A stretch of 64,000 nucleotides of DNA from Takakia lepidozioides. Lineage: Eukaryota; Plantae; Bryophyta. Numbering within the stretch: the stretch's first letter is position 1; every line of letters begins with the position of its first letter. Both the position numbers and the translations under genes were made by a program. The stretch spans positions 56,172,001 through 56,236,000 of the forward strand of contig CM060734.1 in assembly GCA_030704615.1 (NCBI GenBank), in the 5' to 3' direction. Below the pieces are notes generated by a model. That model was given only the letters and a program-made list of their open reading frames with translations, was not told where the DNA came from and made no database searches. This document shows, piece after piece, positions 5,351-44,900 of this stretch.

Positions 5351-6242
5351 GGCACGTCGGGCTGTGGGGCAGTTCAACAACCCTGTTGCAGTTTAGTCAA
5401 CGACTGCCCGCGGTCGACGGCGCGGTCCGGGCCGGCAGGCTGGCGGCTGCCGACCGACGGAGACGAGGATGTCGGAAAATGGGGGGCCGGCGTGTACGCG
5501 CGATCTGTATATACGGACCCCGAGCGCTTGCGTGCGTGTACTTGGGACGCCAACTCAGCGCGGTTTGTACGTAACTCGAGTTGGATCTCGCGGTACCATA
5601 TCGGCCGCCTGCCAAATCGCGGTGCCCAACGCAGAACACGGCCCCGACCAACCATTTGCGTACACCCCTATATATACATGTTGGCTAGGCCCAGTGCGCG
5701 CAAACGACATGGGATATATCCCGACGCCCGGCCAACCCTGTTTGTTGTCTCTCGGGAGGGACGACTGGGGCGGGTATAAATATTATCGTTGCTGGGACGA
5801 GCCACACATGTACCCCCTGCACCGTGCTTTCACCCGTTCTGTATTCTACTCCCGTGGGGGTAATGTCAAAACTTCAAATACGTAGCTTTACCGGGGGTGC
5901 ATCCGCGGCCCAAGATCTGCATACGTGGCCCCAAACAGTTTTCATGGAACCCCGCAGGCGGACCCAGGGCCGATTGAAGGGCCACCCGGCCATGGTAGCC
6001 TGCCGGTGTCTGGCATGGGGCCCGCCTGGCAAGGGGCGGGTGAGGTGGTCCCCCCAATACCACGGGCGACATAGGGTCCTAACCTGGCGACCCACTTTAT
6101 GACACGGATAAGTATCTGAGCGTGGAGAGGCCTCGCAAGAGAATGAGAATCTATAACTGACTTCATCGATACTGGATGAATTGTGATGATTTAGCCACAC
6201 AGAAACTTCACCCAAAAAAATGCTACACCACCAGTGGATGGA

Positions 6243-8696: not shown

Positions 8697-9060
8697 TATT
8701 ATTATAATCCAGCTTTTACTTTTTTGTAATAATATAATACGCTAAAATAAGAGCGGCAGCCGCCGGGTTGCGCGGCCGGAGCGCAGGCGCAGATCCGGGG
8801 CGCGATCGCAGGGCAGGGCACGTCGCGGGTGCCGTGCGGCAAAGGCCGCTGCCGCCGCACGTGCGTGGCGAGGTGGGGCCGGCGTGGATCCATGGGATGG
8901 GATGGATATGGGATATATGGGGGCGGGCCTAATGCCCCACCTGGTCCGAATATGGCAGCTTTTGGGGCTAATAATTGAGGCGCGCAGGATCGAACGCGGG
9001 TACACCAAAAATACATTCCGAATTATATCCCACCCTGTACCCTGCGGGGTCGCCTGTGAA
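8697..9060. repeat. GC-rich dispersed repeat, copy 2
   Basis: Same conserved blocks in the same order as 4975-5350. Confidence 0.6.
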
Positions 9061-11333
9061 GCTGCATGAAAAGAACGGTTGAACCACCACCGTGACCGCA
9101 GACCAGATCGTGCGGTTACTGCGCAGTTGACAGAAGGTTGCCGCGTGGCGGCGTTGATGAGTGGGTCTGTGTAAGTTGTGGAATACATTTATCTTAATGT
9201 AAGTATTCGAGTTGTTGTCTCTTGTTTTTTTTTGTTTTTTTTTCGTTTTTCTTGGGGAAAGTTGGACATGTGATTGAAAAACATCATAAAATAGAATATA
9301 TCCAATCCTATAAAATGTGGTATAATGACAATTTGATGAAGTGATTTTATGTGGCATTATATTTTTAATATATTTTTCATATTAACCTCCTAAAACCTGC
9401 TCTTGGGGATGCTTCGCTAGCTCCCGAGATAATGTTGTTGGACGGTCCATCCCGCATGGTTGCACCCATCCTTGTGTTGTGCTTGTTGATCCCCCAATTA
9501 ACAGCTGACATTAACGAATCAGATGGACAAAGAGTTTGCGCTACTGGCATGTGCAACACCACTAGTTTTTTCCTACTACCCAAATTAAACCACTGAATAA
9601 ACTTGGTTGACAAACATGGTTTATGCGCTACTAATGGGGGAGCTTGTTGAGCATTTGACAAACTCACACCATCCATTTCAAATGAGATTTGTCCCTCTAC
9701 CACACGAGCAATCCAACCTGTAAATTTTCAAAAAAAAAATTCCGTCCTAATAGATTTACTAGTAATAAGAATATCTGCACATCATGACCGGCCAACAACG
9801 GTTGCAACACCTCAACTCGACAATTGGCCCCAAATGCGTGCTCAATACTTTTAAGGCAACTTAGAGCCACTTGAGTTAAACTGTTGCAAGTGCAAGAAAT
9901 CCCACAATTTCTGCGGCAATGGTTGGTGTTGCTATATTAGCAACTCAATGGTGTCGGATGGGATGGGCATCATTTCAATGTTTCAACAATCAAACGTTAT
10001 GTTCTAAACTAGGCTGAGGTAGTCATGTCTTCTTTATGCAAGCCTTGAGAGTCTCAATAACATTTTACATTGCCCATATAGGAAAAAAATCCATTGTAAA
10101 AAGAAAACATCTTTTTAGGTGTATTTCTTATTCGTGCCGTTTTGGGTGAAGTTACCTTATTTATCCTTTCCCTACAATTCAAAAGCCTGGGCCTGATAAC
10201 TAAATTGTGATAGAGTCGAAAGTTTGGAGTGAGCATGTAGATAGTTGATTGAGCAATAGCCCATATGTCACAGCCACACAATGCTTGCACAACTTTCCAT
10301 GGCCGCTAGTGTCCATATTGCTTGCAAAAAAGACAAAATAGGAAGAATGGTTGAACTAGGTATGAAGTAAAAGGAGCTTTGGGTGACCAATAGAATGTTG
10401 AACGATTGACATCCAATAGATAGCCTAGTGGTTACCTCATAATACCATTTCATTAGTGATGGTGGCTTCAAAACCACATATGTGTTGGATGTCATAAAGG
10501 TGTCACCTTCCCTTCAGAAGGCAATAGCCCTCAGGGGTCATGTTACCCTATGCTTGCTACGGCAAGAGTCTACATTTTTATTTTTTTTATGAGTTTTTGA
10601 TGGATGTAGCAGCTATTCGTTTGTCAGAACTAGTTCATCCGAAGCGATTCTATACCCAAAGAATATAGATTCTCAAAAAGTAAACCCCAAATTTACTATG
10701 CATATGAACATACTATGTTGGTTTGGTATTGACGTTTTGTAATACAAGGCTGGTCCGGTATATAGGTGGCTGTCAAAATAAAATATCAAGTGGAAACTGA
10801 TACGAGAGGATTTCTTGAATTTACATACTAGTCCGGTATCCATAATGAAGGCTTTGTGAAATACTTATGCACTGATATAAATACAACTAGATTAGCTAAT
10901 ATCGGCTGGTATCAATGATGACCTCTGGTATCAAACCAGATTCAAGTTCATGACAAAAACAACTAATGAAGAAACATGCAAATGAATCCAAGCCATGAGT
11001 GAAACTTCTAAGCTTACAACATAATCTGGTATATAAGACATATACATCAGCAACCAAGATATTCACAATATTTGACATACAAATCAAATCACAAAAGTCA
11101 TTGCAGATTCCAAAGGAGCCCATACTCGCACTTTGATATAGAATGTAAAGTTGTTGGAAGAAAGATCAAGATCACATGAGACCTGATATCCAAAATATTT
11201 CTACTTCATAAATTATCACAAGCATGAAAGCAAAGTTTCGAAGCTAGAGCTATTACACTCCAGATTCTACTTAAGCTATTCATCTTGAAAGTAACCAGCC
11301 TCCTCAAGCTCCTCCTCATAGTCATCCAATAAC

Positions 11334-17207: not shown

Positions 17208-20200
17208 ATGGAGTCTTTGAGAGCAAGCCATCGTCTTTCATATGCACGGCCGCACGACATGACCCTTAATCACACGAACATGAGTGGAGGAGTTCCAAGC
17301 CCCCCTGAAAATTGCTGGTCTACCTCAGCTTGGGATAATCACGCTCCGACTGACGCAGGACGCATGGAGGAGAGTGCGGGAGGAGACTACAACACTGGCC
17401 GCATGGACTGGGATATCAAGTCCCATCCCTGGGACTGGGAGAACATCACGATGGTCTGCGGTGGCCGTTCGGGAGAGGGCCGCAGGTTGCCGGCGAGTGA
17501 GTGGGGGATCGGTGGATGCGCTGTTGTGACAGCTGATACCCCTGGAGGAGGAAGTGCTCCTTCTAAAGACTTTGGCTTTTCCATCAGTCTTGCATCAGAG
17601 ACCAGTGCTCCTTCAGGAGTTTCTTCCGTCTCATCAGGCATCCCAGGCTTGGCAGCGAGCAGGGGAGGTGGTGAGCACGACTTCTCATTGGTGAAGTGTG
17701 AACCGGACCTGGAGCAGGGAGGAGACGAGTCAGGTAGTGGACCCACTCTGACCACGTCTGAACAGCAGAGAAGGCTTTTTCTGGGGCTGGCGGCACCTCC
17801 TGGCCCTGATCTCTGCGAGGGGGGCCAAGGAAATGGAGCTGATGAGAATAAGCCCTCAGAATGTCACAGCAATGGGGGAAATGCAACACATGTGGTATCA
17901 GGGGATTCTTTGATGGGTTTGAAGCTTGGTAGACGCATCTACTTTGAGGACTCAGGAGGGGGTGGAGGAGGGCAGAAGGGAGTTGCGTCCTCATCTTTCA
18001 ATGCGTCACCTGCCTTAAAGAAGCAACGTTCGGCCTCTCCTGGTATGCAAGTGCCGAGGTGCCAAGTAGAGGGGTGCAAGGCTGACCTAACTCCAGCTAA
18101 GGACTATCATCGACGCCATAAAGTGTGTGAAACGCACTCAAAGGCCTCAAAGGTCGTGGCTGCCGGCCTAGAGCAGCGTTTTTGCCAGCAATGTAGCCGG
18201 TGAGCTAACGATGTTGCCTACAATTCTTGCCATTCTTGTCTGCCTGTTCCACCTCGGTCTCGGAGTCCGATTTCTGACCTTAGAACTGATGACTGTAGGC
18301 TATAACTTTACAGGCTATCCCCTCGTTGTGTGTAGTGCGAAGCATGTCACTCACAAGCGTTTGGGTCTTGGAATTTAATGCATTCAGTCGCTTCTGTCAG
18401 TGTATCCAGGATTTTTGAGGGATTTTAGGAGGGTTTTTGTTCTCAAACAGTTTGCCTCCGTCTGATGCATGCATGACTACACCAACAAATGTACGGGCTG
18501 TCAACGTTGCAGAATCAGAAGACTGATTGTACAGTTGTGGCATGTTGTATTTCAGTTTCTCTTTTGGTAGGAGTTACCGTGTCCCTGATTATCGAGTTCT
18601 GAAATCAGGAATACTCACATGTCTCTCATGTCACGTTTCCCTCCCCATATTTTTGGAAGTTTTGAATACGAAATTATGCACACTAGTACGACTTATTATT
18701 CAATCCTGACCTACACACGTAACTTCTTTTGGGAATAGAGCTGGCTGGTAAGTTCACCATGTACAGAGGTTGTGAAGTGACTGATTCCTCCCAACTTATG
18801 TTCCTTTTAATCTTTGGTTACCTCTCAAATGTGAGCTCGGAGTTCATGCTTCTCACATTCATAAATATTTCTCCTCAACAATATACATGTGAATTCTCTG
18901 CTACCATGACTTTTTGACTTTGGACGAGCTTTCTTTTTCTGAATCTTTCATTCTATGTTGCTACATAGGAAATTTCTTGCACCAATTAGTGAGCTCTTTC
19001 TTGATTGGATTTGTCAGAGTTTCCGTTAGAGGGAAGTAGAAGCTGGAGGTAAGGCAGCAAGTAGCGGACTTGCAATTTCGATTTCTATTTTCTTCATGTT
19101 TCAAGCCTAACTGTTGGGTTTGAGGATGGTTTAGGTTCCACGTCTTGGCAGAATTTGATGAAGGAAAACGCAGCTGTCGCAGAAGATTGGCAGGACACAA
19201 CGAACGTCGGCGAAAGCCACATCCGGATATAGTCTCCACAACTATTGGAAGCTCATTACCTCTTCACCGTGATATTAGCGCTCATTTGTCTTGCCTGGCG
19301 GGTGATGGTAAGCGTCAATACCGTCTCTTCCTGCCATGTCTGGGTTGTGTTTGATCTGTGAGAGAAGGGCAAGTGTTTATGTGGCTGTTTTGTTTCTTAA
19401 GATTTCAGGTCACATCATAAAACCATTGTGGCTGGTGGTGTTGATTCCTCACCTCTCAAGAATTAAGTGAGCTGGATGTGTCACCTAAAGGAGTATCCTT
19501 TCTGCTGGTGGTTCAGTGTTTCTAGAAATGTCAGGTGCAGAATGTCACTGGTATACATCTCACAGACTACTGACTGATTTATAAACTTTAGGTGCCAATG
19601 ATTTTGTGAGTGTGATCTATGTTATTGGAACCTTCTTATGTTCTCAGATACTTCAGCTGGATAATTGGACCTTATCTAGTAGGCATCCACCTGTTTGTTG
19701 CGCTATTGCTTTCTCCGTGCATTGTAAAAAGTGAGATTCTGAGTATAATTTTTTTGTAGGTGCAGTATACGTACACAAGTGTGGGGTGCCTTAACCCTCT
19801 CATGTCCGTTAAGTGCCAGATGCCCTACTGAAATTGATATTCCTCGCGCTTTGACTTGCAGACGACAAGGCGTCTAGCAATAGCAACAGTCTCCTGGAGC
19901 ATTCATGCTATCTGTCTCGAGGGACAGGGTCCTCAAGCACATCCCTTGAAGATTCTGATGATCACACACACCCATACAGGACCAATTTGAAGCTTACTTC
20001 AGGTGTCCCTTGGTCAAGGATGGGTACAATGGATGATGAATCTGGGCTTGGCTGCCAAAGCTTGCAGGTTAATGGCGTTCTCTGTTAAAACTCCTAATTG
20101 ATGTTAGAACTTGACCCTTTCCCTTTCCGTTCACTTCACAAATATATGATCTGATAGAGTTCTTGTCAGTCCTTTAGAGCAGGCTCCCTGGTTATCTTAA

Positions 20201-21704
20201 CAATTGTTGACCGTTACCTTAGCATATGCCAACCATTTTTCTGATTTCTCTGTATAGACTTGTGAAAGTGTAGTTCTCTTATGCAATGATGGCTGCAGCA
20301 ACAAAACCACAGTTATCCTCCCTAAGGGGCAATGTCTTTGGGACAAGGCCTTTTAAAGACCATGTCCCAAGTGCTTCCTATCTTTGTACAGAGTAAGGGT
20401 ATTGCCCTGATTTGCTTTATGACATGTATTAGACAAGGCCTATGAACCATGTCAAGAAAAGCCCCTTGGTGTCACACTGTCAAAACAAGTCAGCCCCCCT
20501 TCTGTCAGTTTGACGTGAGAGACTGAGAGTCTTGAGCCTCCTTAATGCCACACTATCAGCTTGGTAAAGATTGTCTCGGGGAAGTCTTGTGCTCAGTGTC
20601 GTAACATATCAAACTTACTAGTGAGATAAGATTTGGTAGGACTGAGAAGAAGCATAAAGTTTAGACTTGAAATGGTCATGAGCTTTTGTATTTAGGGACC
20701 AGACTTCATTAAGTAGTCCCTCTTTCCTCAGCTTACCACTTCAACCAGTGATCTTGAGCTTTGTTGACTTGCAGGCTGCAAACTCTGACAGGCAACAATC
20801 CATCTTTTCGACACTATCTGGCCCAACAGCTGATCGTCTGCTTATGCTACTCCAGAGTCCAAAGGGGCAAATGGCAGCTCCTCATGTGTCAATTGGAAAT
20901 GCTGGAAGTCCTCACCAATTTTTGCAAGGAACTCCTGGGGCCCATCTAGGACAAGGCTTAACGCTAACCCCCTCCCTAGGTGGTGGAGGGGTTGTGGGGA
21001 GTCTAGAACATGAGGGACCTAGGAGACCCTCCTCCCAGGGTCTTTCCAATGTTTTGGGACTCTCCAACTCAAGTCGTGCTCTCTCTCTTCTGTCATCACA
21101 GTCGTGGGCCCCTCGCCCACACTGTGTGTCTGGACCGGATGCCCTTGATCTCTCCCAGGCTAATGTGACTCTGGAACAATTCGTGGCTAGTAATGGTGAC
21201 AACAGTAACTACAATCGGGGCCCAATTTCTCAGCGCTTGCAGATCTTGCCGACAGTGGGATCCCCTGCACGGAACCAGCAACCACACGATCAGTTCTCTG
21301 CACTAGAAAAGGTCTTCCCCATGCATTCTAGAGATTTGGGGGTTGATGGTGGGCTTACAGATGGGGCAAGCCATCGGTATAGGGATAGTGAGGATCATCA
21401 CCGCAACGGTAGTAGCAATAGTTTACTTTCAGGTCTGGGTGGATTTGAAGGTGCGCATTCTATGGTGGGGTTTCTACATCCAGGCCATGAATTTCGGGGT
21501 CTCTCTATGGTGGCAGGGGACTGCCACAATTCTCGCCACACTATTGATCTTATGCAGGTGCCCTCTTCCCAGGTGCATGGAAACTCCGCAGTCTCTCATG
21601 GAGGTGGACATTCTCAGTCTCATCTATCCTCAAGTGGACAGTATGCAGACTTCACCTCTCTCAGACCTATTGAGTCTTCTGTATTCAGTGCACAGCAGCT
21701 CTAG
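17208..21704 (+). CDS. SPL: SBP-box (SPL) transcription factor, miR156/529-targeted clade (SPL-A), about 766 aa
   Basis: Exons 17208-18199, 19135-19307, 19862-20067, 20775-21704, all GT-AG and in frame (2301 nt). SBP domain [28 protein letters not shown]|[27 protein letters not shown] split by the conserved intron; GLKLGRR motif upstream; ALSLLS motif in the last exon. Start ATG inferred after a 5'UTR intron (donor near 16901, acceptor 17149 or 17199). Confidence 0.93.
21071..21095 (+). promoter_or_regulatory. miR156/miR529 target site in SPL-A coding sequence
   Basis: AAGTC-GTGCTCTCTCTCTTCTGTCA: canonical miR156 site (21076-21095) overlapping a miR529-type site; encodes RALSLLS. Confidence 0.95.
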
Positions 21705-22199
21705 AGGGCATGATCCCTTCTGAGACAAACCTTGCAAGTTGTGTTGAAATTGAAAGTTTGCTTTTATATTCCTTCAACTGCAAACTTTCCCTTTTTATAG
21801 CGATCTTAAGGTAATATTTAGCTGACAGACTAGTTTTTTTGGTCTTTTGCCAGCGTTCCTCAATTGTGTTTCCACTCTGCCATTCATATTAACTCTTGAT
21901 GTGGAGTTGTCTCCAGAGACCACAGTTACAGTTTATAATCTAGATGAGCAAGTGTGAGGTTAGATGTTTGTTGCAACTCCAAGATTGTCACCTTTCTTCA
22001 GAAATAACCTGCTTTATGACAATGACAACTCTGTAGCTGAGTGTATGTGAGATAGCAGGACGTATACATATATATAGACATTGGGGAAACTTGGGGATTG
22101 GCCCTCTAAAGAGTAAGTTCAGCTCAGGCGAATAGTGTCCTGGGTTCAAATCAGTGTTTTTTTTTCAAACTTGAAGAATAACAGGAGTGAACACGAAAC

Positions 22200-23180
22200 C
22201 ACCTGATTTTTTATTTTTTCTTGGAATGGGACGGAGGCTCTTTTAATCAAATTAATAAAGAAAGAGGTACAACAGGGTGGAAAAAAATAACCACCTAGGA
22301 GGTCTTGGGACAGAGGGGGAATCACCCTGCGACCAAGCCAACAAGGCTGAAATACCAGAGATGCAGAAAAACACTCTCTAACCAGAAAGGCGAAGTAGCA
22401 GAAAGCTGCAGGTGAGCCCAAAACAATGGCTGAAGAAGAAAGCGTCCAAAATCTCAAGGGAAAGAAGCCATAATCACCCGCAGCCATGAGCCTACAGCCA
22501 CTGCCTGAAGCCACATCCTACTGGCTTGTGCCAGAAGCTATTACTGCAAGCAGCAAGCCAATAGCGATGTCTGCTAGATGCTGTAAATTGAGCTAAGCTG
22601 CAGGGTGCACCGAGAAGCGAGCCAGAATTAGAAGTTCAGCTGGGTCTTGAGTGCAGGCTCCCTAGATCGTTTGTGTCGCCAGTGGTAGTCCCTATCATCA
22701 CCATCACCTGGGGACGGTGTCTTCCCATCGAACTGAGTTGGAATTTCTGGAGCCGAGCAAGCCGCCCTTGCACCAGGTGTGATCGAAATCTTGGAGGAGC
22801 CGAGCTCTGCGTTCTTTGGAAGACTTGGGAAAGTTGCACACAGATATATCCATGCCTTCCTCCCCTCAGTCATCACATCACGATACAAATTAAACAAGAT
22901 TGTTCTGATGCTGGGTCTCTTCCGCTGCAGCGGCATGATGCGGTAGCATTGGACTGACCGGGTGAGTGGCCCTGGTTTCCCGTGGTACTTACTTACACAG
23001 GCATCTGTTAAATTCCAGAGTGTGTGACAAGCCCAGATTGGGCAGGTCAGCAGGGTCTAGGCAGGATATTAATCAGAAAGAAAGACGGGGCAGAAGGAAG
23101 CCTATTCCACTTGGAGTAGAAGCGAATGACAGCACGCAGGTGATGTGAGCAGTGGGACAAAGAACCAAACAATGCTCCCG
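22200..23180 (-). mobile_element. 3' fragment of an L1-type LINE
   Basis: A-rich tail on - strand at about 22205-22220, T-rich 3'UTR, degenerate C-terminal ORF. Confidence 0.35.
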
Positions 23181-29800: not shown

Positions 29801-30791
29801 ATAGCACTAGTTCACTCATTTCCGAAGAAAGCCACTGACCGAGCCAGGCAGAGATCTCTGCTGCCTAACAAAATTCTTCCCAGTAAATCTACATGTGTTT
29901 GGCCTTGAGTTGAATACCTCAACACTAAAACGGCCAACATCCATCCGCAAGTGATCGCAGAGTTCTTCAAAAAGTGGGGAAGGTAGACAGACCACTTGCC
30001 TGGCCAACTCTAGCCGCTTCAAAGGGGGCAGAGCACGTGTTCACAACATTGATTCACATGAAATGTCACCCTGCTATCCTGCCCGTGCATCATATACAAA
30101 TTCTTTATAAGAGTACAATCAGCATAGCATAGTACAATGCCATCAGGACACACAATTCTATATGAGACCACAACTGCGAGGACATAGTACTTTATATAGT
30201 AGACTGCAAGTAATCTTACACATCAAGGTCCAGAATGCTATATTAGACCATGATAGTAGAGAAACAGACCCCATATTACTCAATCGCAGATCCATGGCAA
30301 GTAATCTATCATATAGCTTCAGAAATTAAGACCTCTAGATTTGATGATGTTAATCTTTAAAAGGCCCAAAAACAGCACTGCCCATCATATTTATAATGGG
30401 CTATGGAGCATCCTTTACATCTGGTATATAGAGAGTTAAAAACAGTAAAACTATGGAAGGTGTAGTAGTAACTAACTGGGAAAAGGGTTTGTTCAAACAT
30501 TTTCATATACACAGAGAATATGTACAGGAGAGTGGTCCTCATAAATAGTATTACCAAAGTGACCCGTGCTTAGTGTCATGAGTGACAAGGTGCATATACA
30601 TAAACACATTACTGTAAGAAAGAACCACTAACAATGGAGATGGCACATCTTTCATGTGTCTTTCAATACTCTTCTTAAGTTGTAATTATCATGGAGTAAA
30701 CGAAAAGCTGATCAACGGTAGAAGAGTAGGGATGGAGAGGATGAAGGCAGATCGAGGCCTACCGCAGACAAAAAGTTGTGAAATTGGCGGC

Positions 30792-33700
30792 TCACAAAAG
30801 ATTGTGATGCGAGTCATAAATAGATGACGCCCCAAAGGGTCGAAGAGCTTGGAGCTCACCATACTTCATATCAGGCCCACCAGGCCCACAACCTCCAGTG
30901 GTGCCAGTGTGTGTGCCAGTATCCCCAGAAGTCTCATTCCTAGAATTGGGATGATGCAGAAACTCCATGGCACGGGAACCTGGTACACTTGCACTACTGG
31001 CATTGCTAGGAGGATTGGGCCCATCACCAGGTCGTATGGTAGAATTTTCCAGCAAGGCCAGCATCTGATGTCCTTCCAGCTGACCACCTCCGGACAAACT
31101 ACTCAAGGAAGACGAAGGCCCAAAATGGCTTGATCCATCCCGGGAATTTGCAAGACTTCCAAGCATCCACTCGGGGCTTGATATGTCTCTAGATGATGAT
31201 TGAAGCGGCAGCATGTTCTGGTTGGACGGTGAGAACACTTGAACATCAGGATCCTGTACAAAATGTATAAGAGTAAACTACCTTACTGTTCTTAGTAAGG
31301 TCCCCTTGTGCAAGCTCAGTACACTAACCCAACATGGCAGAAGCATTCAACAAGGTCACTGTGAGCTACAATTTCCAAGTCCATATAGGAATGAATGCTA
31401 TAAAACAATCCAGATGAGCTATTGACCGCATAATGAAAAAGGGAAACGTGGATTAGGACTTGGAACGCCTTCAAAAACTTGGAAAGGTCACTAAGCGATT
31501 AGAGCCCTGCTAAACACTTGAAATGCACAATGAACTACTTGAGCAATATGCCACAAAATGCATGAACTAAGTAACCTGAGAATTTGAAGAGTTTGCTGAA
31601 GCTGAATTAACACTCTGGTGAGAAGATTGCCCATTTTTGGAGTCACTAGACATGAGCTGTTGGAGGTTCATGGTGCCTGTTCTGGTTACTGTTTGGCCCA
31701 AATCTGCTCGAGAGCCCATGGGCTTCAACCAGGGAACAGGTGGCTCCATCCCATTGTAGCCTTGGCTGATTGATGTTTGGCCCCGTGGACCAGCTTGGTT
31801 TCCAAGCCCAAGATGCCCCCCCAAAGAAGATAGAGACAGGTTTGGGCCAGTTTGGCCTGCACCAACTCCCTGCAACCAACGAGGCTGCCGTAATTTGCGA
31901 TCAAAAGATAATTAAAAAACCACATGACGATGGAGCAATATGGATCAAGTAAGACAATGGGATGATTACTTCCTACAACTCTCATCATCCCTGGGTGAGC
32001 AAGAAGTTCTCTTGCACATATATTTACTTAAGATGCAATTCCATACTTATATAAGAGCCCCTAAAGTCCGGTGTTGTTTAGGCTAGCTATGATTTACACA
32101 CCTCCAACAGTCACTGAAAAATCTTACCCTTCATTTCTGAACACGGGTAAGACAAGGGTGCAACAGGACTTAACAAAGTTCTCTTACAAATATGACTGCT
32201 ATGCCAATGTCTAATGAACTAGTAGGACAAAGGCTAGGGTACATTCATGATCCTAAAATTATACCTGTAAGAACTGCTGGTAGACAGTAGCATCCTGGTT
32301 GTGATTGGCACCCCCAGACATCATTGATAGATGGCGATTAGCATTGTGTAGCATGAGGGGGTTTGGTGGCGAAAGGGACATGGCAGACAGTAAAGCCTGT
32401 GCATCAGAGCCCGTCATGGCTTGGGAACCCATTTGCATCCCAGTTGGCCGTTGATCATCACAGTGGCCTCGTCCAAATGTTGAGCCCGATGTTCGTAGTT
32501 GCAGGTTGTTTCCAGCTGATCCAGATTTTTCATCGGAGTCATCATGCAAGGCTGAGGTTGGAGACCCACATTTCAAGTGCATAAGCATTGTCTTGGGGTT
32601 TGCTTTTTCTTAAAAAGAAACAGTAACACTTCTACATAAACAAACACATGATGTCTAGCGCCAAAGTTGTTGAATGGAGATGTTGAATGGAGAAACTAAG
32701 TGTCACTAGGTCAAAACAAAGACAAAAGAAATGACGTTATGTTGAGTACTTCAAAAGCTAACCTGTGGCACGGTTGATTCCACTGAGATCACCATCATCA
32801 GTGCGATCCTTCATCCCCATGGACTCAGCTGTTGTGCCAGCTGTGACATTGGGCTGTGGCTTGCGACGGCGTCTATTGTGGTCAGCCAGCCGCTTTCTAC
32901 AGCTCCTTTTCCCCTCGTCAAACTCAGTCAGTAGGTGAAATCTGGAAAAACGGAGACTTGTTATTTCATATTGAGCAAAAGATCGCTCCCTCAAACTTGA
33001 TTAGACCATATTTCAGAATCCTTAGAAGCTTAACAAACCACTCCTTGTCCATCTAGAAGTGCCAGATTACATGAAACTGGATAAAAATACTGCAATATAC
33101 GACAGAATTTGCTTTTGGGAACTGACTTCCTGCTTCCTAACTTGTAGGGAAGTGTTTGTCATACTTAGCGCACAACAAACGATCAGTGGAACACACCTGC
33201 TGCATTGTTGACAAAACCGCTGAGTATGACCAGCAGCTACCACATTTGGGGCCTTTGAGTGCAGCTCACATACTTTGTGGCGACGATGGTAGTGCTTGGC
33301 TGTGCTGAGATCTGCTTTACAGCCCTCAGCCTGACACATAGGAATCTGAGAACTAGGAGAGTTTGCTCTGTGTCTCTTTCCGAGCCGCCCTGCAGCAGTG
33401 TCCTCTGTTGAAAAGTAGGTTCGTACGCCAAGGTTGAGCCCGATTCGTGCACCATGTCCATCACTCACCTGAGATTCAAGTTGGCATAAGGCAAAACATC
33501 ATTTTGGGTATAGCCAAAATAATTTTCTTTTGAGATAGAGCCCTGTAGATCATATTAAACAAGGAAATAAATAACCTTGTGGGTGCCATACTATTTCTAT
33601 TTAGCCGTATTGACAGAAATTCCAAAGGCTCAAATAGAAGGAATCAAATTTCTTAGACTTAGCTGTAATTAATGTTCTTGTAAATTAAATGGTCTAACTA

Positions 33701-34825
33701 ATTGCTCGCCTCTAGGCTAAATGGGGGCTAAGATTTTCTTGGGCCACCTAGGAGATTCCTAGGGGTATCAAGAACCCGTTTGGCCTGGGAGAACCCAAAG
33801 GGCAGAACCTGCCAAATCTCAAAGCAAGCTTGCGAGAAGCATGGCCTCCCGCATATGTGAAGCTGATCTCACATGGACCTACATACTAGCAGTTTTCTGT
33901 AGTCAAAGTCCCTTTCCTCATAATAAATAAATGGCAAGGGTTTGTAAAATTGAAATCTCACATGATAACTAATTTAGTGATCATTCAAGGTCTTAACCTC
34001 TACCAACAGGAGCCACACGGTACATTACCTCCTCTCGTTTGACAACGTGGTGATGGTCATGGACAACGGCTGCATAATACTCCCTACGTCGCTGTTCAAA
34101 GGAGGGCCGCATGTCTCCATGCATTCCTGCTCCGCTAGAAGCTGCAAGGCCTGGAATGCCTGATGATCCAAGGTTGTGCAGCGGTGAGCTCGTTGGAATG
34201 CTACTTGAGCCGTGCATTGCTGCAAAGTTCCGAATTCCAGCAGAGCTAAATATGCCCATAGGGTGTTGGGCGAAGTTGGATGGAAGGCCAGTAGCCAGCA
34301 TGTTGTTGTATGCGCGGAGGCTGGACATTGTGCCTAAATAGTTGGGCAATCCACAACCAACAAAACTAGTGTTAAGATACAGGTGGATGTTTTATGATCC
34401 CAGAGGCTAGACGTTGTGCCTAAAAGCATTGGAGTATTCAAAACCAACAAAGTACAGTTAATACACAATGTCCTACTTTTCTGTTTCAGTATTAACACCC
34501 TTTAAGCCCTTTATGCTCAGACTCGACCTTACATGTTGCAATGAGGACATGATCGTCCCAAAATCAAAACTGCACAAAGACATGAAAACACTACGATACC
34601 TGCAGTGATCTGGTTCTTTCGGTCTCCATCTGTACCATCATTTGAGCTGGCACTGCCAGGATTCTCCGCCAAAATCATTGGATCCCACTCCCACTCCAAC
34701 CGGCTGGCTGGGTACAATTGACGTGAGGTCTGCTCGAGGCTGCCAACTGCACCAGGGTTATCCCAATTCTCTGTTGTCCAGCTTGGGTCACCTTGCTGGT
34801 CGTTGGTATTTGCAGATGGGTTCAT
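30792..34825 (-). CDS. SPL: SBP-box (SPL) transcription factor, SPL8-like clade (SPL-B), about 693 aa
   Basis: Exons 34825-34600, 34333-34029, 33468-33197, 32941-32763, 32608-32265, 31869-31576, 31253-30792, all GT-AG and in frame (2082 nt). SBP domain [28 protein letters not shown]|[27 protein letters not shown]; [12 protein letters not shown] motif typical of SPL8-type proteins. Confidence 0.93.
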
Positions 34826-37800
34826 CCCATATACCACGAAAAGGGAGTTTTGGAGAAAATTTATGACCAATAGGTAGTTCCAAAATGGCAGCTTACAAAC
34901 ACACAAAGACAAGCTCAACACTTGAGGAAAGCCTTCAGTCAGTTGACAATATCTAGAGCAATGTTCCTGCAGGAGGTGGATGTTAAGTCAATGAGAATAA
35001 ATTAGTCGAGTAGAAATTCCTTCAAGAGATGACGATCGGAAATGAGATGTGTTAAATTGCATTGTAATTCTATATTCAATACCACAACTGCACAACTGGA
35101 GATTAGTGCAGCAAACCTACATCCCTTCAACACAGGGAACAGATAAGTGCCCTTATGAGTTGGAGTCTTGAACAATAGTAATAGAAGTGCTTAGACTTCC
35201 TTGTAGTAACTTATTCTTTGCTAGGTACACCAGGTACACCACGTTCCAGTTGGTACACAAAGAAAACCCCCACTGGATCCACCATGTAAGATCAGGTGAA
35301 GGCTGCCAAAGAAACCCTGTAGTTGCACAATACACAGAACGCCTAAGATGGTCAACAACCCAGGCCAGATTCAAGTGGATTTGTAAGGTCTTTGTTTAAT
35401 ACCTTACAAGTTCCTCCTTGCAGTAACCTATTCTGCTGTGCACCCTGTAGATCTAGACCCTACAAAACCCCTAGGTAAGTTTGTCCACAACTCAACATTG
35501 TTGAAATGGCGAGGTCTTTGTTTAATACCTTTCGCTTGTCTGTGTGTGGTCGTTTCTCCCAGTAGAAGCGCCTCTCCCTTGAATAGTAACCGATTCTGTT
35601 TGTATGCACCAGGTAAGAGCAGGTGCACAATGGAGCAGCCCCCTAGATTCACCAAGCAACAGCAGATGCAAGGGAGAGAAGATCCAAAGATCCCACAGTT
35701 GTAGCTTTGCTACGATCACTTGATACTTGAAGGAACTGAAGAAACTGCACCCAGCCTGTTTGGCCCGGTGTGACAATTGCTACTCGGACAGAGACTTCAG
35801 TTTGCAGTAATGATCTTCCTGTTTCCACAAACTGATGGCTCAGAAATGAATGGGATCAGTCATTGCAGCTCCTGTATGCACGTGTGTTCTGGAGAAGTAT
35901 CAATTCTCAAACTGAGGGGGGCTGGAAGTGATAGCAGTGTAAGCAAATGAAGGAGGAAAAGATGCCCAGCCAAGAGAAACGGCTTCCTTATTTGGCTAAG
36001 AAAGAAATGTGAGTCCTGCACATCAGCTTGCAGAGTGCTCCCTTCCCTTCAAGTGGCAGAATCTACAGTTGCAACCTCTCCTGATTTGATTTGACTTTGA
36101 CAGCTGAACGTTGAAGGCAACACCTGAAGACCCCACCAAAAACTGGACCACTCATCCACGAGTTTAAGAATTATGCCCAGATATACTTGAGAGAGCAACA
36201 AGTTATGGAAGAGACTTCTTCAGACAACCTCAAGTAGACAATGACAAAGACATACCCCCCCATGTTGAAGCATGCTAGGTTGATCAAAAGCATGTCCTTT
36301 CTGTATATTTTCTCTGGTAAGTGCAGCAACTTAAAAGGAAATCCTTTAAGGACAACCACTGATGTATATAACAACAGAATGATCCCCTTCTAAGAAAAAC
36401 AGGTTAATCACTTAAAAGTAAGTCCAAGATTGCTTTCATAGCGGGGGCTAGATCCTGCAAAACTTACATCTCCAGAAAGATCCTCCAGTTACTTAAGGCT
36501 GTGCGCACTGAATGTAGGCTCCTGAGTGTTCTTGCGGCGAGACCCGAGCAAGGACATCCATACACCAGTTGCGTCTTTCCAACAAAACTAGTTTCAGGTC
36601 CCAAAATGCAAATGTCTGACTACAGGTCTCTTGCCTCCCACCCCAGGTGGGATCATTCATTGGCCAGCTATCTCACACTTACTGAGTTTTCTTGTCCCTT
36701 AACATGGGTGAGTACATTCACTAAAAATATAATGTAAGACTGAAACTTTCATAGACCAACTGCATCTTCCTTTGAAATCAGTTCCAGGTTTACATTTCCA
36801 AAGAAGCAATTCTCCAAATATAAATGTAGTCTTCGTCAACGCCCCCATAGAGAGTTAGAAATGATTCACCCTCACCCTAAAGAGAAACCTACTCAGAAAA
36901 CGCTCTGATATGGATTCAGACTTTCTTAAGAATTCAATTTCAACGTTACAGGTCTCTCAGTCTCATTCATGATACATGTCAGAGCCCCTCTAACTTAGAT
37001 AAAGATTTTCTCACTAAACTCTAGGCCATATCGGCAACATAATGCTTCCTCCTGGGAAATTCATGGATTCATTCACAGAAATTCATTTGCTCATGAGCTT
37101 ACAAGAAGCCACCATTTTGTGGACATGAATTGCTCACATTCAAAATCTAGCTATCCTGAAACAAATGCTAGTCCATAGCGCTGCGGAGCTCAATGCATAG
37201 AAAAAGATCACATCTTAGAAACGCAGATCTCTTTCTATGCCTCTCCTCTTGTGTTGTTCTGAGATGACCCATGAATGAGGCCTCCACTAGGAATTCTTCT
37301 CTTTCTCTGTAAACTGAGAAATACTGACTTCAACTTCCCCGAGAGTTGTGGAGCAATAATAGCACATTAAACTCATATATTGACTGAACGGGGGACGCTA
37401 TTGCTACATGGTACTAATGCATCTATAAGCATGCTTGTATTATGTACATAGGCGTACTATGTCCCTACAGGTGGTGGTGCGAGTATGCGTACACCCAGAC
37501 CCAAGTGTCAGATCAGCAATTGCTCCGTTATCTTACTAGTGACGGGCAAGATGCTTGACACCAGCGTGGAATCTTTGGGAACCAGCTGTGGGAAACCAAG
37601 ACTTACAAGCTCACTACAGACATGAAGGAACTGCTAGATGAATTTGAAATACCACGACATTCGATGAGCTCTCATACAATTTGAGAGCAGGTATTTCAAA
37701 CCCTGTGAGGCATGTGACCTAGATTGCACGAGATAATTCTGATCATCTCTGATCATCTGCAATTGTAATCTCACAGTTCATCCCCCAAGTTCTGGAAACA

Positions 37801-38456
37801 TACCTTTCAAAGAGACTTCCGTGCACGTTTGGCAATCTGTGACACTGCCACCAGTTGGGAGAAGCGGGAGCAGCCAAGAGTCCAGGAGGACGAAAGATGA
37901 AGGCTCCGTAGAAAGACTGATCCTCTATGATATAATGCACTTGCCAAGCATAAGACGGTGCAAGGCTTACGCAGCCACCCTGAAGCACATCTTACAAGAA
38001 GCGACCGTCTAACGTTCAATCGCGGACGAACGGAGTAGAAATCCTGGCAATGGAGTTATGCGACGATAGAAGCTCCTTCTCTGCCTCAGTGACTCCTAGT
38101 CCTCAAAAGTTTGTGACCCAATGTCTCTAACACCAGCTTGAAGCTCCCTTCCAGTTCTCACAGCCCCAAATCACCAACCTGGAACTCTTCTCAGGTCGCA
38201 ACTTCTGCATTTGCTTTGAACAAGGTTGTAGCGTCTGGACATAATTACGGAAGAGCGCAACTCGCCCTGTTGCCAGGAGGTCTTCACTTCAGCACTAGCT
38301 AATCTGCCCACCCACCTAACAGTGAACTTCCTACTATTTGTTGAGCACGAACAGTAGCTTCTGTTCCACAGTCTAATTTATCTGCTTTTCTCGTCCGACT
38401 GCCTCTGGAAGTCGAATGTTCACAGTGTTGGACTTGCGGACAAGGTCCAGGTGAGG

Positions 38457-38477
38457 TGACAACGGGAGAGAGCAAAC
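38457..38477 (-). promoter_or_regulatory. Candidate miR535 target site in the SPL-B 5' leader
   Basis: + strand TGACAACGGGAGAGAGCAAAC is 18/21 identical to miR535 (UGACAACGAGAGAGAGCACGC), so the - strand is complementary to it. Confidence 0.55.
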
Positions 38478-39039
38478 CGAGAGAATTTCTTCTCACATTC
38501 AAACCAACATTGCTGTGACCAGCTCTGCACCTCTACGAGGAGCTCTAATCTCTCCCCCTCTCCGGCCACCTCTATCAATCAACCCGTTTACCCCACGCAC
38601 TTCCATCGCACAAGCCGCCAATGGGGCGCCAATACTCTTCTTAACCCATCTTTTTCTGCTGGTCAACACTATCCTCCCAAACTAACCCTTTACTCTCCAC
38701 CCCGCCGGTTCCTGGGGACTCACTGGATCTCAGCTGCGAATCTCTCCTCTCCCTCTAACACTGCACTTTCTCAACACACGCTCTCAGCTACCCAGCACAA
38801 CACAGGTACTCAAATCAGCAGCTCAGATTCGCCATCTGCTGACACTGTCTCTGCCTCAGCTGCAGCTCCCCCGCAGCTACACAAGGACTCTTCACCTCAT
38901 CAATCCAATTCCATCCACTGCGATGCCCTTCTTATACCTCCCTCTACCGCCTACACTCTCAAAGCTTGTGCAATCTGCCTTCCTACACCCCACCTCCACA
39001 CGTACTTGAGCCAGCGCAGCTCGATGGCGATGGCGTCCT

Positions 39040-39930
39040 CTCCCTCCGTCCCTCCCTCCATCTCTCTCCCTCTCTCTCTCTCTCTCCCCTTCTCTCTCAC
39101 TCTTTGGCAGACAAGACAAAAAGCGAGGCCTAACCACAGTGCAGTCTACGGATCCTAGACTGCTCGGCCTATGCTTAGCCCCGATATATAGGCCCACGTA
39201 ACCCGCCTGTGATTAGGTTAAGCTCTCCCACACACGCTCGTTACTTCTCTCATTCACCCCGGGTAGTAACTTGGTTTACCTGCCTATTCGCAAGTAGCTG
39301 TGGATGGATGTGGACCTCCATTCGGTAGAAGGCATCCATCCTGGGGACTTATAAATAAATGGGATTAAAAAAGGGAGGCAATATTCAAGATATTAAGTCT
39401 GACAGCGCAGATTAAGTGCGGGGATATCTACGGCCCGGTCAAGTCGACCGTACTTTTAACCTGACACACCCCCCTAATTAACCCTCTTTAACTCTCTGCC
39501 ATGCAGCCGCCCTAACCTATCACATCCCCATGAATGCATGCGCAGCATGTCGAGTCATGCCATCATGCCATGCCTGCTCATCGCGGAGATGACATGCTTC
39601 CGTACCGTTTTTTCTACGGGCCATTAAGGCCGGGTATTTGCCGCCCGGTGGCCAAACTACGCAGAACGCGGGGAGCGTAATTAGTTCGCTAAGCCAACTC
39701 CTTTGCGATCCAAACTGCACCGTTCGCGCGCTAAGTGAAGTGATTAGCGGGCTGAGTGAAGAGATTAGCGATGTAAATGGAGTGGTTTAGTGCGGTAAGC
39801 TGCACGGCACGCCGCGCGGGCATCCGGCACAGATAGGGGACTAATCTGTAGGTAGGTAGACCAACCTAGCGTAGGCGTAGCCCTAACCCACCCACTCTCG
39901 CCCTAACCCAGCCCCGCACCTAGCCCATAA
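39040..39930 (-). promoter_or_regulatory. Putative SPL-B core promoter and start of 5' leader
   Basis: - strand TATA (cctatatatc, about 39183-39192) followed by a (GA)n tract at 39040-39100; upstream CpG-rich region with CCGTAC, CATG/RY and CCCTAACCC motifs. Confidence 0.55.
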
Positions 39931-40514
39931 CTGCCCATCATTCCGCTCCTTTCTATATTATACTCGTTCCGTCTTTTCTGTAGTTTCACTTGGTATGGAA
40001 GGAAAGACACAGCGCCGAGAGAAGGCTTACCACTTACAACTCAAGCCCCTTATTACTTAGTTGAGTGAGAGGGAAAAATACGCAGTGTTGGGAGGATCTT
40101 TGATTGGGGACCTACCTAATCTCCGCCTCATACGAATTCCAATATACCTATCCCCATTAAATCGGTAGCTCTCAAAGTTGTTTTTTTTTTAAATTAAAAA
40201 GTTTTGAAGAATTGGCCCGGTGAGTATGGAAGTGCAGGTAGTATAATCGATCAAATGTCCTGTTGAAGAAGATTTGTGAAGTAACTGCCGGATATTTCAT
40301 GAGATCCGTAGGGTTTTTGAGGTTTTGCGATAGTAGGATATATCCTGACATGAATCTTGCTTGTATCCCGAATTGGAGGCTCTAAGGCCTAGTTTTCCAA
40401 AAACCCGAACTGGAGGGACAGGAGCATATGACAGAAATCAAAATATCCGCCCAACATTGAAAATGACCTCGCAATGTGGTGCATGGACAAAGTGGAGGTT
40501 GGGGGAGAAGATTA

Positions 40515-40770
40515 TAGCACATCCGACAAGGTAGCAGGATTTGAACCCCGCCGCACCTGAGTGACACTCAGTTTAGTTTTCTGCAAGGAGAAACTGTTTG
40601 CTATCTTATATATAGCTAAGTGCTGCCCAGGTGATTCTGGGTTCAAACCCTGCTACCTTTTCCCATTGGGGGCAGTCAAGAAGGATATTTTGAAAGAGGT
40701 GGCACAAGCTCAGCACTAAGTGCCACCAGGTGATTCTGGGCTCAAATCTTGCTACCTTGTTGGAATCCCC
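40515..40770. mobile_element. Three copies (one -, two +) of the tRNA-derived SINE-like head
   Basis: Repeated ...ggtgattctggg(t/c)tcaaa..tgctacctt at about 40612-40660 and 40705-40770; inverted copy at about 40515-40575. Confidence 0.55.
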
Positions 40771-40849
40771 TTCCCTTGGGCCGTGTCTCATGAGCTTTGT
40801 GCAACCCTCATGGTTAGGTTACTTTGAAGATGTTGACAATCCCTGGTAA

Positions 40850-41920
40850 GGACACACACCGCTTCAGTAGTGGTTGTGGGTTCAAACCACAAGCTGGATG
40901 TCCTAAAGGTCTCCACCTTCCACGAGAATGTCGGAGCTCTTTGGGGTCAATAATTTACGCTTGCTTCGGCAACCCATCCACTTTTTTCCTTTTGGGGCTT
41001 CCAAGGAAACACCAGCCAAAGCAACTAGGCCTACAGGGAGAAAAAAATAAACCCCCTATTGGGCCATGACAGCAAACAACAAACGGCAGAGAGAGACAGC
41101 TAGTAGGGGTTTGAGCCCCAGACCCATAGTTAAATGCACGGGTTGTGCTATTTTTATTGGCCGAAGGCAGGACTACACAAAGGGTTGTGGAATATAGCAC
41201 CCATACTCTCCATTCACAAACCCATTAGTTCAAGACTTGGGTGAAGGGAGTATTACATCCATATTTACAGATGAAATATTGAAACAACATGGAGTTCGGA
41301 TGGTCAATAGACTGTCTCCCATTTCATTGTCATATTAGACAAATGGTTGTCCAATATGACAAAGGACAACCGTTGCAAAAATTTGGCAAATCCAGGTCAT
41401 GGATTCAAAATTACAGTAGGGCAGGGCTTGCATGTACACTGCATCTGTTTTTCTGAAAGATTTTTTCTTTTCCAAAAATGAGAAGCTCTTAAATCTTATT
41501 GAAGAACATGAAAAAAAGCCTTGAGCTACGAAGACAACGGGTATATTATACCCTATGTTTGGGATAGCGAAAGACGGATAAAAAGGAAAAAGCATGTAAG
41601 GAAAAAGAAGAAGCAGAACATACAAACATACGTAACGCTTGTTCCATGCCACAATGATGTTAATCATTATATTCGATAGCGGCGCCATGAAGAACCATTT
41701 TGACAAAGGCGATGACAATTGTAATTTCCTCCCATTTCACTCTCTTACCCACAAACAACCGGCATGTAGCCCAGTCGAAATGGACACATACCATGTTGGA
41801 TGTGGTTGTGGGTTCAAACTACGGTTTGGTGTGTCATGAAGGTGTCCACCTTTCAGTTCGAAGGCAGTAGCCCTTGTGGTGAAGAAACGCCATAATTTAC
41901 GCTCCCTTGGCGAGGCGTCT
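40850..41920 (+). repeat. Two diverged copies of a ~130-bp repeat with a B-box-like GGTTCAAAC
   Basis: ggacaca..tggttgtgggttcaaac..aaggt.tccacctt..ataatttacgct at about 40850-40970 and 41780-41910. Confidence 0.6.
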
Positions 41921-44900
41921 ATATTTTTATTTTATTTTCTTAGCCATAAATAATTTATTTATTTCAGTAATTAAAAATTACATTTTATTTTATTTTTTAA
42001 TTATAAAATATTGAACGGGATGCCCAGCATTATTAAAAAATAAAACCCTCAGGGGCAATAGACCAGATAGACACACTGAACCGGTGAGGGGTAAAACCCC
42101 TAGAGACAGGCTCTAAAGAAGGAATGATCACAAGAGTTGCGAGGAACAAGACAGGTCCCAGAAGGCCCAAGCGAAAACAAAGGAAAGAGTAGGAACAACC
42201 TCAATGAAGGTTCCCACGGAAATCGGATCCCGCAAGTAGCAGCCACCAACAGGAAAGGCCCCCCATGATATTTACAAGTATGAAAAATATCTTTACCATG
42301 CCATGGGAACGTGCGGATTCCGGTTTGGTTCCCAGAGTTGAAGGAGGTATATAAATGAACAGAGTGGATGATAACAAGGAGGTTACGAATGAAAGATATG
42401 GATGATAGCAGCGCGCATCATGATTGTAGAATGGTCAACTCACAGGAACGGTTTCCCACGCACCGCTGGATGGACTCCACTTGTCCGGAGCGATTTCCCG
42501 CCCTACAGCAACGCGATGCTTCGCACGCGTGAGAAGAGCTCCATCATCATCATGCGCCTCATGCCATACAACCCAGCAGTAAGTTACTAGTGAATAGTAA
42601 GTTACTAGTGCGTTAGTGAGGCTGCCGACAGTGACCAACTAGATCATGCGCGGATGGATGAATGAAGTCTAAGGCCAACGTTCGTCGTGCTCTCGCGGGC
42701 TCGCAATCCCACACACTATGCAATGCGAAATGATGGATGAATGTGGATGCTTGAATGAACGATGCGGATGGATAGAGGCGGAGGGGATAAAGGGCGGGCC
42801 TAGTCTACGGGGGGGGCATGTGAGGCGACGGCTAACGGCTGCGTGTCAGAGGCCATGTGCGAGGGCCATGATGGCATGGCAGCCATGACATCATCCAGAT
42901 AGCACGGCCGCGCCATCATGCCATCACCATGGCAGCATGTGCGTCACCATCTACGGATGGCATGGCTGTGGGGCAGGCGTGGGCCTGCCCGCGCTGGAGC
43001 TGCCCGTCGTCTCGCACCTCACGCCCACGCCCTCTCTCTCTCCCGCTGTTTGCTGTTTGCTCACCTCCCTTTCCACTCCCAGTTTCGCTCTCACGGCTGC
43101 GGAAGATTGCTCACCGTTTTTTGAGCAACCCCTCGTTAGAACTGTGTTTTGACTAAGCACGGTACTGGTTTTTAGGGCACGCACTTTTCAAAGAGGTCAA
43201 GGAGGATTGGTGGCCGGTTGATCGATTCCCCAACTCCATACTTACGACATATTGCACCTTCTTCTCGCGCTTTTCCTGGCACTCACATGCACCCACGCTC
43301 ACTCTGTGCAAACATCCTTCTTTCTTGCCTACCGTTCTTTTGACCCAACAACTTCTGCTGACCCCACGCAATTTCTTGTAGTTGGAATGAGCGAAAAAAA
43401 ATATGTATTGAACTTCTACACGAGAATAATTCCTCATAGGAAACATGCGACTAATAATACCGACAAACTGTTGGCAACTCATTTGCCTTGGTCTTATTTT
43501 TAGGTGATACCCCCCAAGGACCACTCGCAAGTGAGGCCCCTTAATCAACCTCTTTGGGAGTAACGTCGTCACCCTAAGTGAGGTGCAAGTGCAAGGACAT
43601 GGGACACCGTCCGAAGGGGAAGTTAATAACAGACGCAACTAGGTAGAAAGATCTGAAGCCAGAATCACCTGGGTGGCACGAGGTACCCAACTGAGTTACC
43701 AACTGGTCGGAGTGAAAACCATCTCACAAATTTTGGAAGAGGCAGAAGTTTGCAGAAAGGAAAGTGGGGAGGAGACAGAAACAAAACACTATCTTGCTTT
43801 TGCTGTGTACTTGTTGTCCAGCTTCCCAACAACTTACTTACACAAAGGTGTGTCTGGTTGAAAAATCGCAAGGGTCAGAAGGATCCTTGTGTACAGCAGG
43901 CAACATATATACCCCCCTTGCGAGAGCATGTTTGGCACCGCCCCAACGCAAGTTGACAAGCGCAGACAGACACAAGGACCGAAGCAGAAGAGATGAATGA
44001 AGGGGGGGCAGGACGGGGGCAGGACGGGGGCAGCCCCTTCACTCCCCGTGTCCCTACGGGCAGAGCCCGTGAATACCAAAAGGGCAAATGGATGGATGAA
44101 GGCGGTCGGATGAATGGGTGCGTAGGGTGTACAGCGCGTCGCCGTCCGTCCGCGGGATGCCGCGCTGGTCGGATGCCAGCGCGGGTCCGACACAGATTTG
44201 ACCCGGCAGCCACCCGACCCGACCCAACCCGACCCTGCACTTTGTCCGGCGATTGCTGCCCCCCCAGAAATCCGGCATCTTGTCTTATTATGTTCCGCTT
44301 GTTTTTTGCTGTTCTCGACGTCTGAAAAAAGCGCGGCGGAATCGCAAGTTGCGATGTGTTGACCGCTGGACGGACGAACGACGGACGACGAATAATAATA
44401 GTCATGATTGATCAAATATTTGGCAGTTTGGCTATCTCGATTTGGTATCGCTTTTCTTTTATGTGTCGGCCCAAAGGTACAGCGCTGCTCTTTATATCCG
44501 AGTACCTGGGTCACTAACTGTGCCTGCAGTTAGTCGCTGTGTTTAAGGCTCCAGGTCACTAACCTAGACCCGAGCGCGGCCCACGCGGCTCCTGCGCGGC
44601 TGGTACGGCGCGGTGTAATAAAAGAGTCCTTCACGCACGCCGTCACCCGGAATCGCAAACATGGGAACGGGTTGGGAACGAGGAGCCCTTTTCCCGCTGT
44701 ATTTTGACGAAACATGTTTTGTCTTGCTATGTCGAGGCCCACTGGCTGATCAGCTTTCAAGTGTGGAGGGGATTCTGCCGAGGGCCCAATGGCTTTCTAG
44801 CAAAGTATTGGCGGAGAGTGGACCCCTTATCGAGATCCCTCCTTCTGTCATTCCTCTCTCTCTTTTGTGGGCTGGGGTGTATGATTCGTCATGTTGTGAT

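Follow-up and report, generated by a model that had tools for sequence, protein, structure and literature searches.

The 5′ leaders of moss clade-III SPL genes carry an element complementary to the miR156/529/535 superfamily of microRNAs, preceded by two upstream open reading frames (uORFs) with conserved peptides; this element and its uORFs constitute a more solid result than the distal miR535-complementary site found upstream of SPL-B, the clade-III gene of the window (the whole 64 kb stretch of Takakia lepidozioides DNA that was analysed). The proximal element itself has decayed in SPL-B, and there is about an even chance that the distal site is a lineage-specific miR535 site that has replaced it. 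A preliminary description of this DNA had proposed that miR535 regulates SPL-B through the distal 5′UTR site. That interpretation is partly supported: the specificity for miR535 and the targeting of leaders in this gene family stand, while the expected conservation of the site and the single-intron model of the leader do not.

SPL-B and the leader of moss clade-III SPL genes

SPL-B encodes an SBP domain composed of two zinc fingers and a bipartite nuclear localisation signal with a conserved intron between them (motif scan and tblastn, 33259-33336 and 32863-32910); the zinc fingers are contributed by exon 33471-33196 and the localisation signal by exon 32946-32770. The exons were searched individually, not as one joined protein, and all seven match the clade-III genes of Ceratodon, Physcomitrium, Sphagnum and Marchantia (MpSPL1) at about 60% identity, the N- and C-terminal exons being clearly nearer to moss than to liverwort genes. 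The best match of the N-terminal exon in the protein collection is 79% identical, and searches with the relatives list MpSPL1 and angiosperm SPL8. By these closest relatives, rather than by a tree, SPL-B is assigned to the clade-III (MpSPL1/AtSPL8-type) SBP-box genes. The earlier view of an SPL8-like gene devoid of a miR156 site thus holds: no canonical miR156/529 site was found in the coding sequence or 3′UTR of SPL-B, and the interval 30000-42000 contains neither a miR156 nor a miR529 site. An internal positive control is provided by the canonical miR156/529 site of SPL-A, the convergent, miR156-targeted neighbour of SPL-B. The same convergent arrangement, in which a clade-III SPL gene faces a miR156-targeted one (17271-21100 on the plus strand and 30795-34825 on the minus strand of the window) is syntenic in Ceratodon (L003, 10001-15413 plus and 19582-22747 minus); in the hornwort Anthoceros, AaSPL1 and AaSPL2 are adjacent gene models (PMC10796333).

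Orthologous regions were compared in 12 moss loci from Ceratodon (two paralogues), Physcomitrium, Sphagnum (two paralogues) and seven JGI/ENA/Logan contigs, which represent about nine distinct genes as some contigs are duplicates. All 12 carry the motif GG[CU]GUGUUCUCUCUC(N2-3)UGUCA at 70-100 nt upstream of the ATG, and no other miR535 duplex of -27 kcal/mol or lower occurs in the sense strand upstream, covered for up to 10 kb. This proximal element does not vary from Sphagnum to Bryopsida, with flanks that are unalignable between the two, and a spliced mRNA (contig L005) with a 5′UTR of at least 1190 nt contains it. Nucleotides 1-5 and 8-21 of miR535 pair with the element (-28.9 to -32.2 kcal/mol), and its natural variation, including a 1-nt indel, is confined to the two or three target bases that are unpaired with miR535. 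The element also pairs with miR156 and miR529; in the Sphagnum paralogue L054 its place is taken by a near-canonical miR156/529 site (miR156, -31.7 kcal/mol; miR529, -35.5 kcal/mol). Since the moss orthologues keep this complementary 5′UTR element, leader targeting by the miR156/529/535 superfamily is, judged from sequence comparison, real biology for the clade-III SPL family. A conserved RNA structure was considered as the cause of the element and rejected, RNAalifold finding none.

Upstream of Marchantia MpSPL1 the proximal element is absent. About 1 kb upstream of the MpSPL1 ATG, at L053 8939-8970, lies an 11-nt perfect match to the 5′ end of miR535 (..GGUCUCGUUGUCA; -27.5 kcal/mol), which may be due to chance. 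The clade-III SPL genes of mosses are reported to have no known miRNA (10.1101/2022.10.03.510622; 10.1101/2023.02.27.530190); the literature searched treats them as miRNA-independent and names just three PpSPL genes of Physcomitrium as miR156 targets. The proximal element is apparently unreported in that literature, while earlier degradome tables may already list it.

The candidate partner is widespread in mosses, where the preliminary description had noted its occurrence. Moss metagenome contigs (JGI) yielded some 20 different MIR535 hairpins, with folding energies between -55 and -90 kcal/mol; all of them (L006-L045) contain mature miR535 in its canonical form, have a loop about 40 nt long and show star arms of the form GCGUGUUCUCUCCCGUUGUC[AGU]. 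In Physcomitrella, miR535 is among the most abundant miRNAs.

The two uORFs lie upstream of the proximal element, the order in the L005 mRNA being Y-like, X, proximal element and ATG. In other mosses, uORF-Y comprises 28 codons, sits at a genomic distance of 1.6-3 kb upstream of the ATG and encodes the peptide MSIPTFLIEDQESMKAENKFLSSHSPIT; Sphagnum and Bryopsida share this peptide unchanged, with codons that differ synonymously, and it has diverged in Ceratodon-5G-type paralogues. uORF-X is found 0.5-1 kb upstream of the ATG and encodes ..SEISKPFLVAGHLFLLHLLILLSLPP.., with the pattern ..KPFL[LV]AGHLFLLHLL[TI]LLSLP.. and the hydrophobic core KPFLVAGHLFLLHLLILLSLP; it opens with an ATG in L003, L005, L049 and L050 and is largely degenerate in Ceratodon-4G-type paralogues.

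Table 1. Positions of the features discussed, in the window or in the locus named
Feature	Locus	Position	Strand	Basis or remark
Canonical miR156/529 site of SPL-A	window	21076..21095	+	internal positive control
SPL-B coding region	window	30795..34825	-	ATG 34825-34823; seven coding exons by tblastn
SPL-B exons (approx.)	window	34825-34600, 34334-34026, 33471-33196, 32946-32770, 32600-32265, 31881-31636, 31256-30795	-	tblastn
Position homologous to proximal element	window	34894..34919	-	decayed
Block X, uORF-X homologue	window	35918..36018	-	frame open for 62 codons; GTG where ATG expected
Candidate leader donor AAG/GTATGT	window	37798..37806, junction 37804/37803	-	sequence
Degenerate uORF-Y homologue	window	38050..38170	-	ATG to ATT, CAG to TAG, indels
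miR535-complementary 21-mer (distal site)	window	38457..38477	-	pairing; predicted slicing between 38467 and 38466
Proximal element	L001	9910-9929		
Proximal element	L002	9911-9930		
Proximal element	L003	9906-9925		
Proximal element	L004	9883-9902		
Proximal element	L005	1096-1115		mRNA
Proximal element	L046	4308-4327		
Proximal element	L049	9906-9925		
Proximal element	L050	5657-5675		
Proximal element	L052	5833-5852		
Proximal element	L054	about 9880-9904		Sphagnum paralogue
uORF-Y start	L001	8202		
uORF-Y start	L002	8350		
uORF-Y start	L004	7896		
uORF-Y start	L046	2493		
uORF-Y start	L050	2721		
uORF-Y start	L052	4036		
uORF-Y start	L054	8367		
uORF-X	L003	~9010-9180		
uORF-X	L005	549-701		
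uORF-X	L049	~9005-9165		
uORF-X	L050	~4693-4844		
MIR535 hairpin (example)	L006	about 5690-5820		
MIR535 hairpin (example)	L009	about 6930-7060		

The distal site and the leader region of SPL-B

Read directly from the window, the minus strand from 38477 to 38457 is GUUUGCUCUCUCCCGUUGUCA, which places the distal site in sense orientation relative to SPL-B. The query used for miR529 is the sequence that we take to be that of this miRNA. The mature miR535 used for pairing, UGACAACGAGAGAGAGCACGC, is the Physcomitrella miR535 sequence (PMC1838911), and both the miR156 and the miR535 queries were checked against that source. The pairing is exactly the one described before: Watson-Crick at positions 1-8 and 10-18, an A:C mismatch at position 9, a C:U mismatch at position 19 and a G:U pair at position 20. 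With an Allen-type penalty of 3.5, the site falls within the complementarity limits applied to plant miRNA targets (a penalty of 4 or less, no mismatch at 10-11 and a maximum of one mismatch in 2-12); the A:C mismatch at position 9 adjoins the slicing position and counts against reading the match as a miR535 site.

Matches of this quality are rare. Over the 64 kb and both strands, the distal site alone matches miR535 with three or fewer mismatches, none of 100 dinucleotide shuffles produced such a match and the theoretical expectation is about 1e-3 per window; for a sense leader of about 4 kb, a match of this kind would be expected by chance with a probability of roughly 1e-5 to 1e-3. RNAduplex, run over the whole window and both strands, returned just two miR535 sites at or below -26 kcal/mol, both in SPL genes: the canonical miR156 site of SPL-A and the distal site itself, with -29.5 kcal/mol. 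The latter value corresponds to 0.72 of the perfect duplex, compared with ratios of 0.52 for miR156 and 0.48 for miR529; within the miR156/529/535 superfamily, the distal site fits miR535 only.

Along the minus strand, the distal site is followed by the uORF-Y remnant, the donor, block X, the position of the proximal element and the ATG (Table 1). The landmarks named in the preliminary description are in place, with a TATA-like run (~39186-39192) measured at about 710 nt upstream of the distal site, for a claimed distance of about 700 nt, and the donor AAG/GTATGT at 37804/37803, about 300 nt downstream of the uORF-Y remnant. Past this donor the GC content is lower (about 0.42, as against about 0.50 before it), a drop that is consistent with an exon-intron boundary, and acceptor-like sites are found near 36100 and 36010. 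The single leader intron formerly drawn from 37803 to about 34969 would remove block X, which is exonic in the L005 mRNA, and this model is thus at best incomplete. The distal site is located about 3.6 kb of genomic DNA from the ATG and 353 nt upstream of the core of the uORF-Y remnant (38104); since the L005 mRNA reaches just 279 nt upstream of its own Y core, against the 353 nt needed to cover the distal site, membership of the site in an exon is plausible by homology rather than proved.

Directly downstream of the TATA-like run is an 80-nt GA-rich tract (39030-39108, minus strand), and the block from 38.5 to 39.1 kb displays a strong G-skew on the minus strand, with a GC skew down to -0.6. 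A GA tract near the transcription start was considered as a conserved architectural feature and rejected, no comparable tract being present upstream of the orthologues.

Each of the ancestral leader features is altered in the window. The position homologous to the proximal element pairs with none of miR156, miR529 and miR535; block X differs from its homologues mainly at third codon positions, and its open frame together with these third-position changes suggests a leader that was in use until recently. The decay of uORF-Y, of the uORF-X start and of the proximal element is also compatible with a transcription start that has moved downstream, in which case the distal site would be untranscribed.

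None of the 12 orthologous moss loci has the distal site in the upstream sequence covered (up to 10 kb), an absence that the preliminary description had itself named as counting against its reading. When metagenomes were scanned for the sequence of the distal site, with any base allowed at its three unpaired positions, 40 loci were obtained: about 30 are perfect antisense matches to miR535 in moss MIR535 hairpins and about nine are unrelated GC-rich contigs, one with the exact 21-mer; none is an orthologous leader carrying the distal site. The identical 21-mer stands at L019 312-332 (minus strand), within a 542-codon ORF of a bacterial-type metagenome contig of 61% GC, which shows that chance does produce such matches in very large data sets. 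The distal site was also considered as a relocated proximal element and this origin was rejected: an nhmmer profile of the element misses it and MAFFT misaligns it. As it is located upstream of both Y and X and is undetected by the element profile, it is not the proximal element moved.

A proposed replacement of the proximal element and its rivals

Replacement of the lost proximal element is the favoured reading because a chance match is very unlikely and because the same superfamily marks the leaders of all relatives; it is further in its favour that the uORF-Y block, 353 nt downstream of the distal site, belongs to the leader in other mosses and that a strong donor comes after the remnant of this block. 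The distal site has the orientation of SPL-B and falls within the ancestral 5′ leader region of this clade-III gene. Other mosses would regulate their clade-III SPL genes via the proximal miR156/529/535-complementary element, and with the decay of this element here the distal site would most likely substitute for it, an instance of site turnover. A long-leader SPL-B mRNA containing 38457-38477 would be bound by miR535-AGO1 and either sliced at the predicted position, thereby separating the cap from the ORF, or translationally repressed. In this proposal, we infer the transcription of the site, the presence of miR535 in Takakia lepidozioides and the repression itself. A broader history can be put forward tentatively, and is to be held with less confidence than the replacement itself: moss clade-III SPL genes, which are regarded as miRNA-independent, would ancestrally have been under miR156/529/535 control via a 5′UTR site downstream of the two conserved-peptide uORFs, all three would have decayed in the present lineage and a new, miR535-specific distal site would have taken over.

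The main rival to replacement, possible albeit rather doubtful, holds that the match is neutral or disused, whether because the transcription start has moved downstream, because the site is intronic or belongs to the promoter, or because it is transcribed without regulatory effect. The decay of every conserved leader feature of SPL-B speaks for such a history, as do the lack of conservation of the distal site anywhere else examined, the chance occurrence of the identical 21-mer in a bacterial ORF and the clash between the intron model and the exonic block X of L005. Against it stand the low probability of a chance match within the leader given above, the fact that the matched miRNA belongs to exactly the superfamily that targets the relatives of SPL-B and the frame of block X, which is still open and differs mostly at third positions.

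A non-coding RNA of its own, transcribed upstream of SPL-B (for instance a lncRNA, a decoy for miR535 or a precursor of the TAS kind), is very unlikely to carry the site in place of the SPL-B mRNA. In mosses, non-coding TAS6 transcripts are targeted by miR156/529, which counts in favour of such a transcript, and the region from 37.8 to 39.2 kb offers about 1.3 kb of GC-rich, G-skewed sequence without a long ORF. The uORF-Y remnant, however, ties this same block to the ancestral SPL leader. Furthermore, there is one site only, no second one having been found, and it lacks the bulge or mismatch at positions 10-11 that characterises IPS1-type mimics, positions 10-18 being fully paired.

Least probable of all is a relic of a MIR535-type foldback, in which the site would represent a star arm (minus strand) or a miR535-like 5p arm (plus strand): although a hairpin profile matches the locus on both strands (E = 0.001 plus, 0.08 minus), moss miR535* arms agree with the site at 17-18 of 21 bases, the C opposite A9 among them, and MAFFT aligns some loop-like bases, the locus does not form the stable miR535/miR535* hairpin that defines a MIR535 gene (no significant fold around the site on either strand, z = -0.7, -0.7 and -0.1), the 83 nt upstream resemble the 5p arm and loop no better than controls (83 of 500 shuffled and 128 of 1500 random genomic segments reach the score), and the window contains neither a mature miR535 copy nor any match in an Rfam search.

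Relation to known systems

In bryophytes, branching and the dormancy of meristems are under the control of clade-III SPL genes, which in Marchantia are themselves gated by a miRNA specific to liverworts. The conserved moss 5′UTR site, if true, would provide a long-missing target for the abundant miR535 of mosses and would mean that miRNA control of clade III arose independently in mosses and liverworts. The distal site, if true, would be a natural experiment in the turnover of miRNA sites inside one leader.

Among known systems, the canonical miR156/529/535-SPL module (PpSBP3, AtSPL3/9 and the miR535-targeted OsSPL genes of rice) involves the same miRNA superfamily and the same transcription factor family. 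Its sites are found in the ALSLLS-coding sequence or in the 3′UTR, whereas the distal site is located in the 5′ leader region of a clade-III gene and fits miR535 only. The Mpo-MR-13/MpSPL1 pair of Marchantia likewise places an orthologous clade-III SPL gene under a bryophyte miRNA; by comparison, it uses a different, liverwort-specific miRNA, for which no site was found within the window. That a long plant 5′UTR can hold functional miRNA sites is known from miR399-PHO2, which differs in miRNA and target family and in having several sites, as opposed to the one in the window.

The closest comparison is with the proximal element of the other mosses, which shares with the distal site the gene family, the miRNA superfamily and a location in the 5′ leader region. 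While the proximal element is invariant, close to the ATG and capable of pairing with miR156, miR529 and miR535, the distal site is remote from the ATG, lineage-specific and restricted to miR535, and the two have no detectable homology. The distal site would represent a variant within the known miR156-family/SPL module, and the 5′UTR element with its uORFs constitutes the more interesting result.
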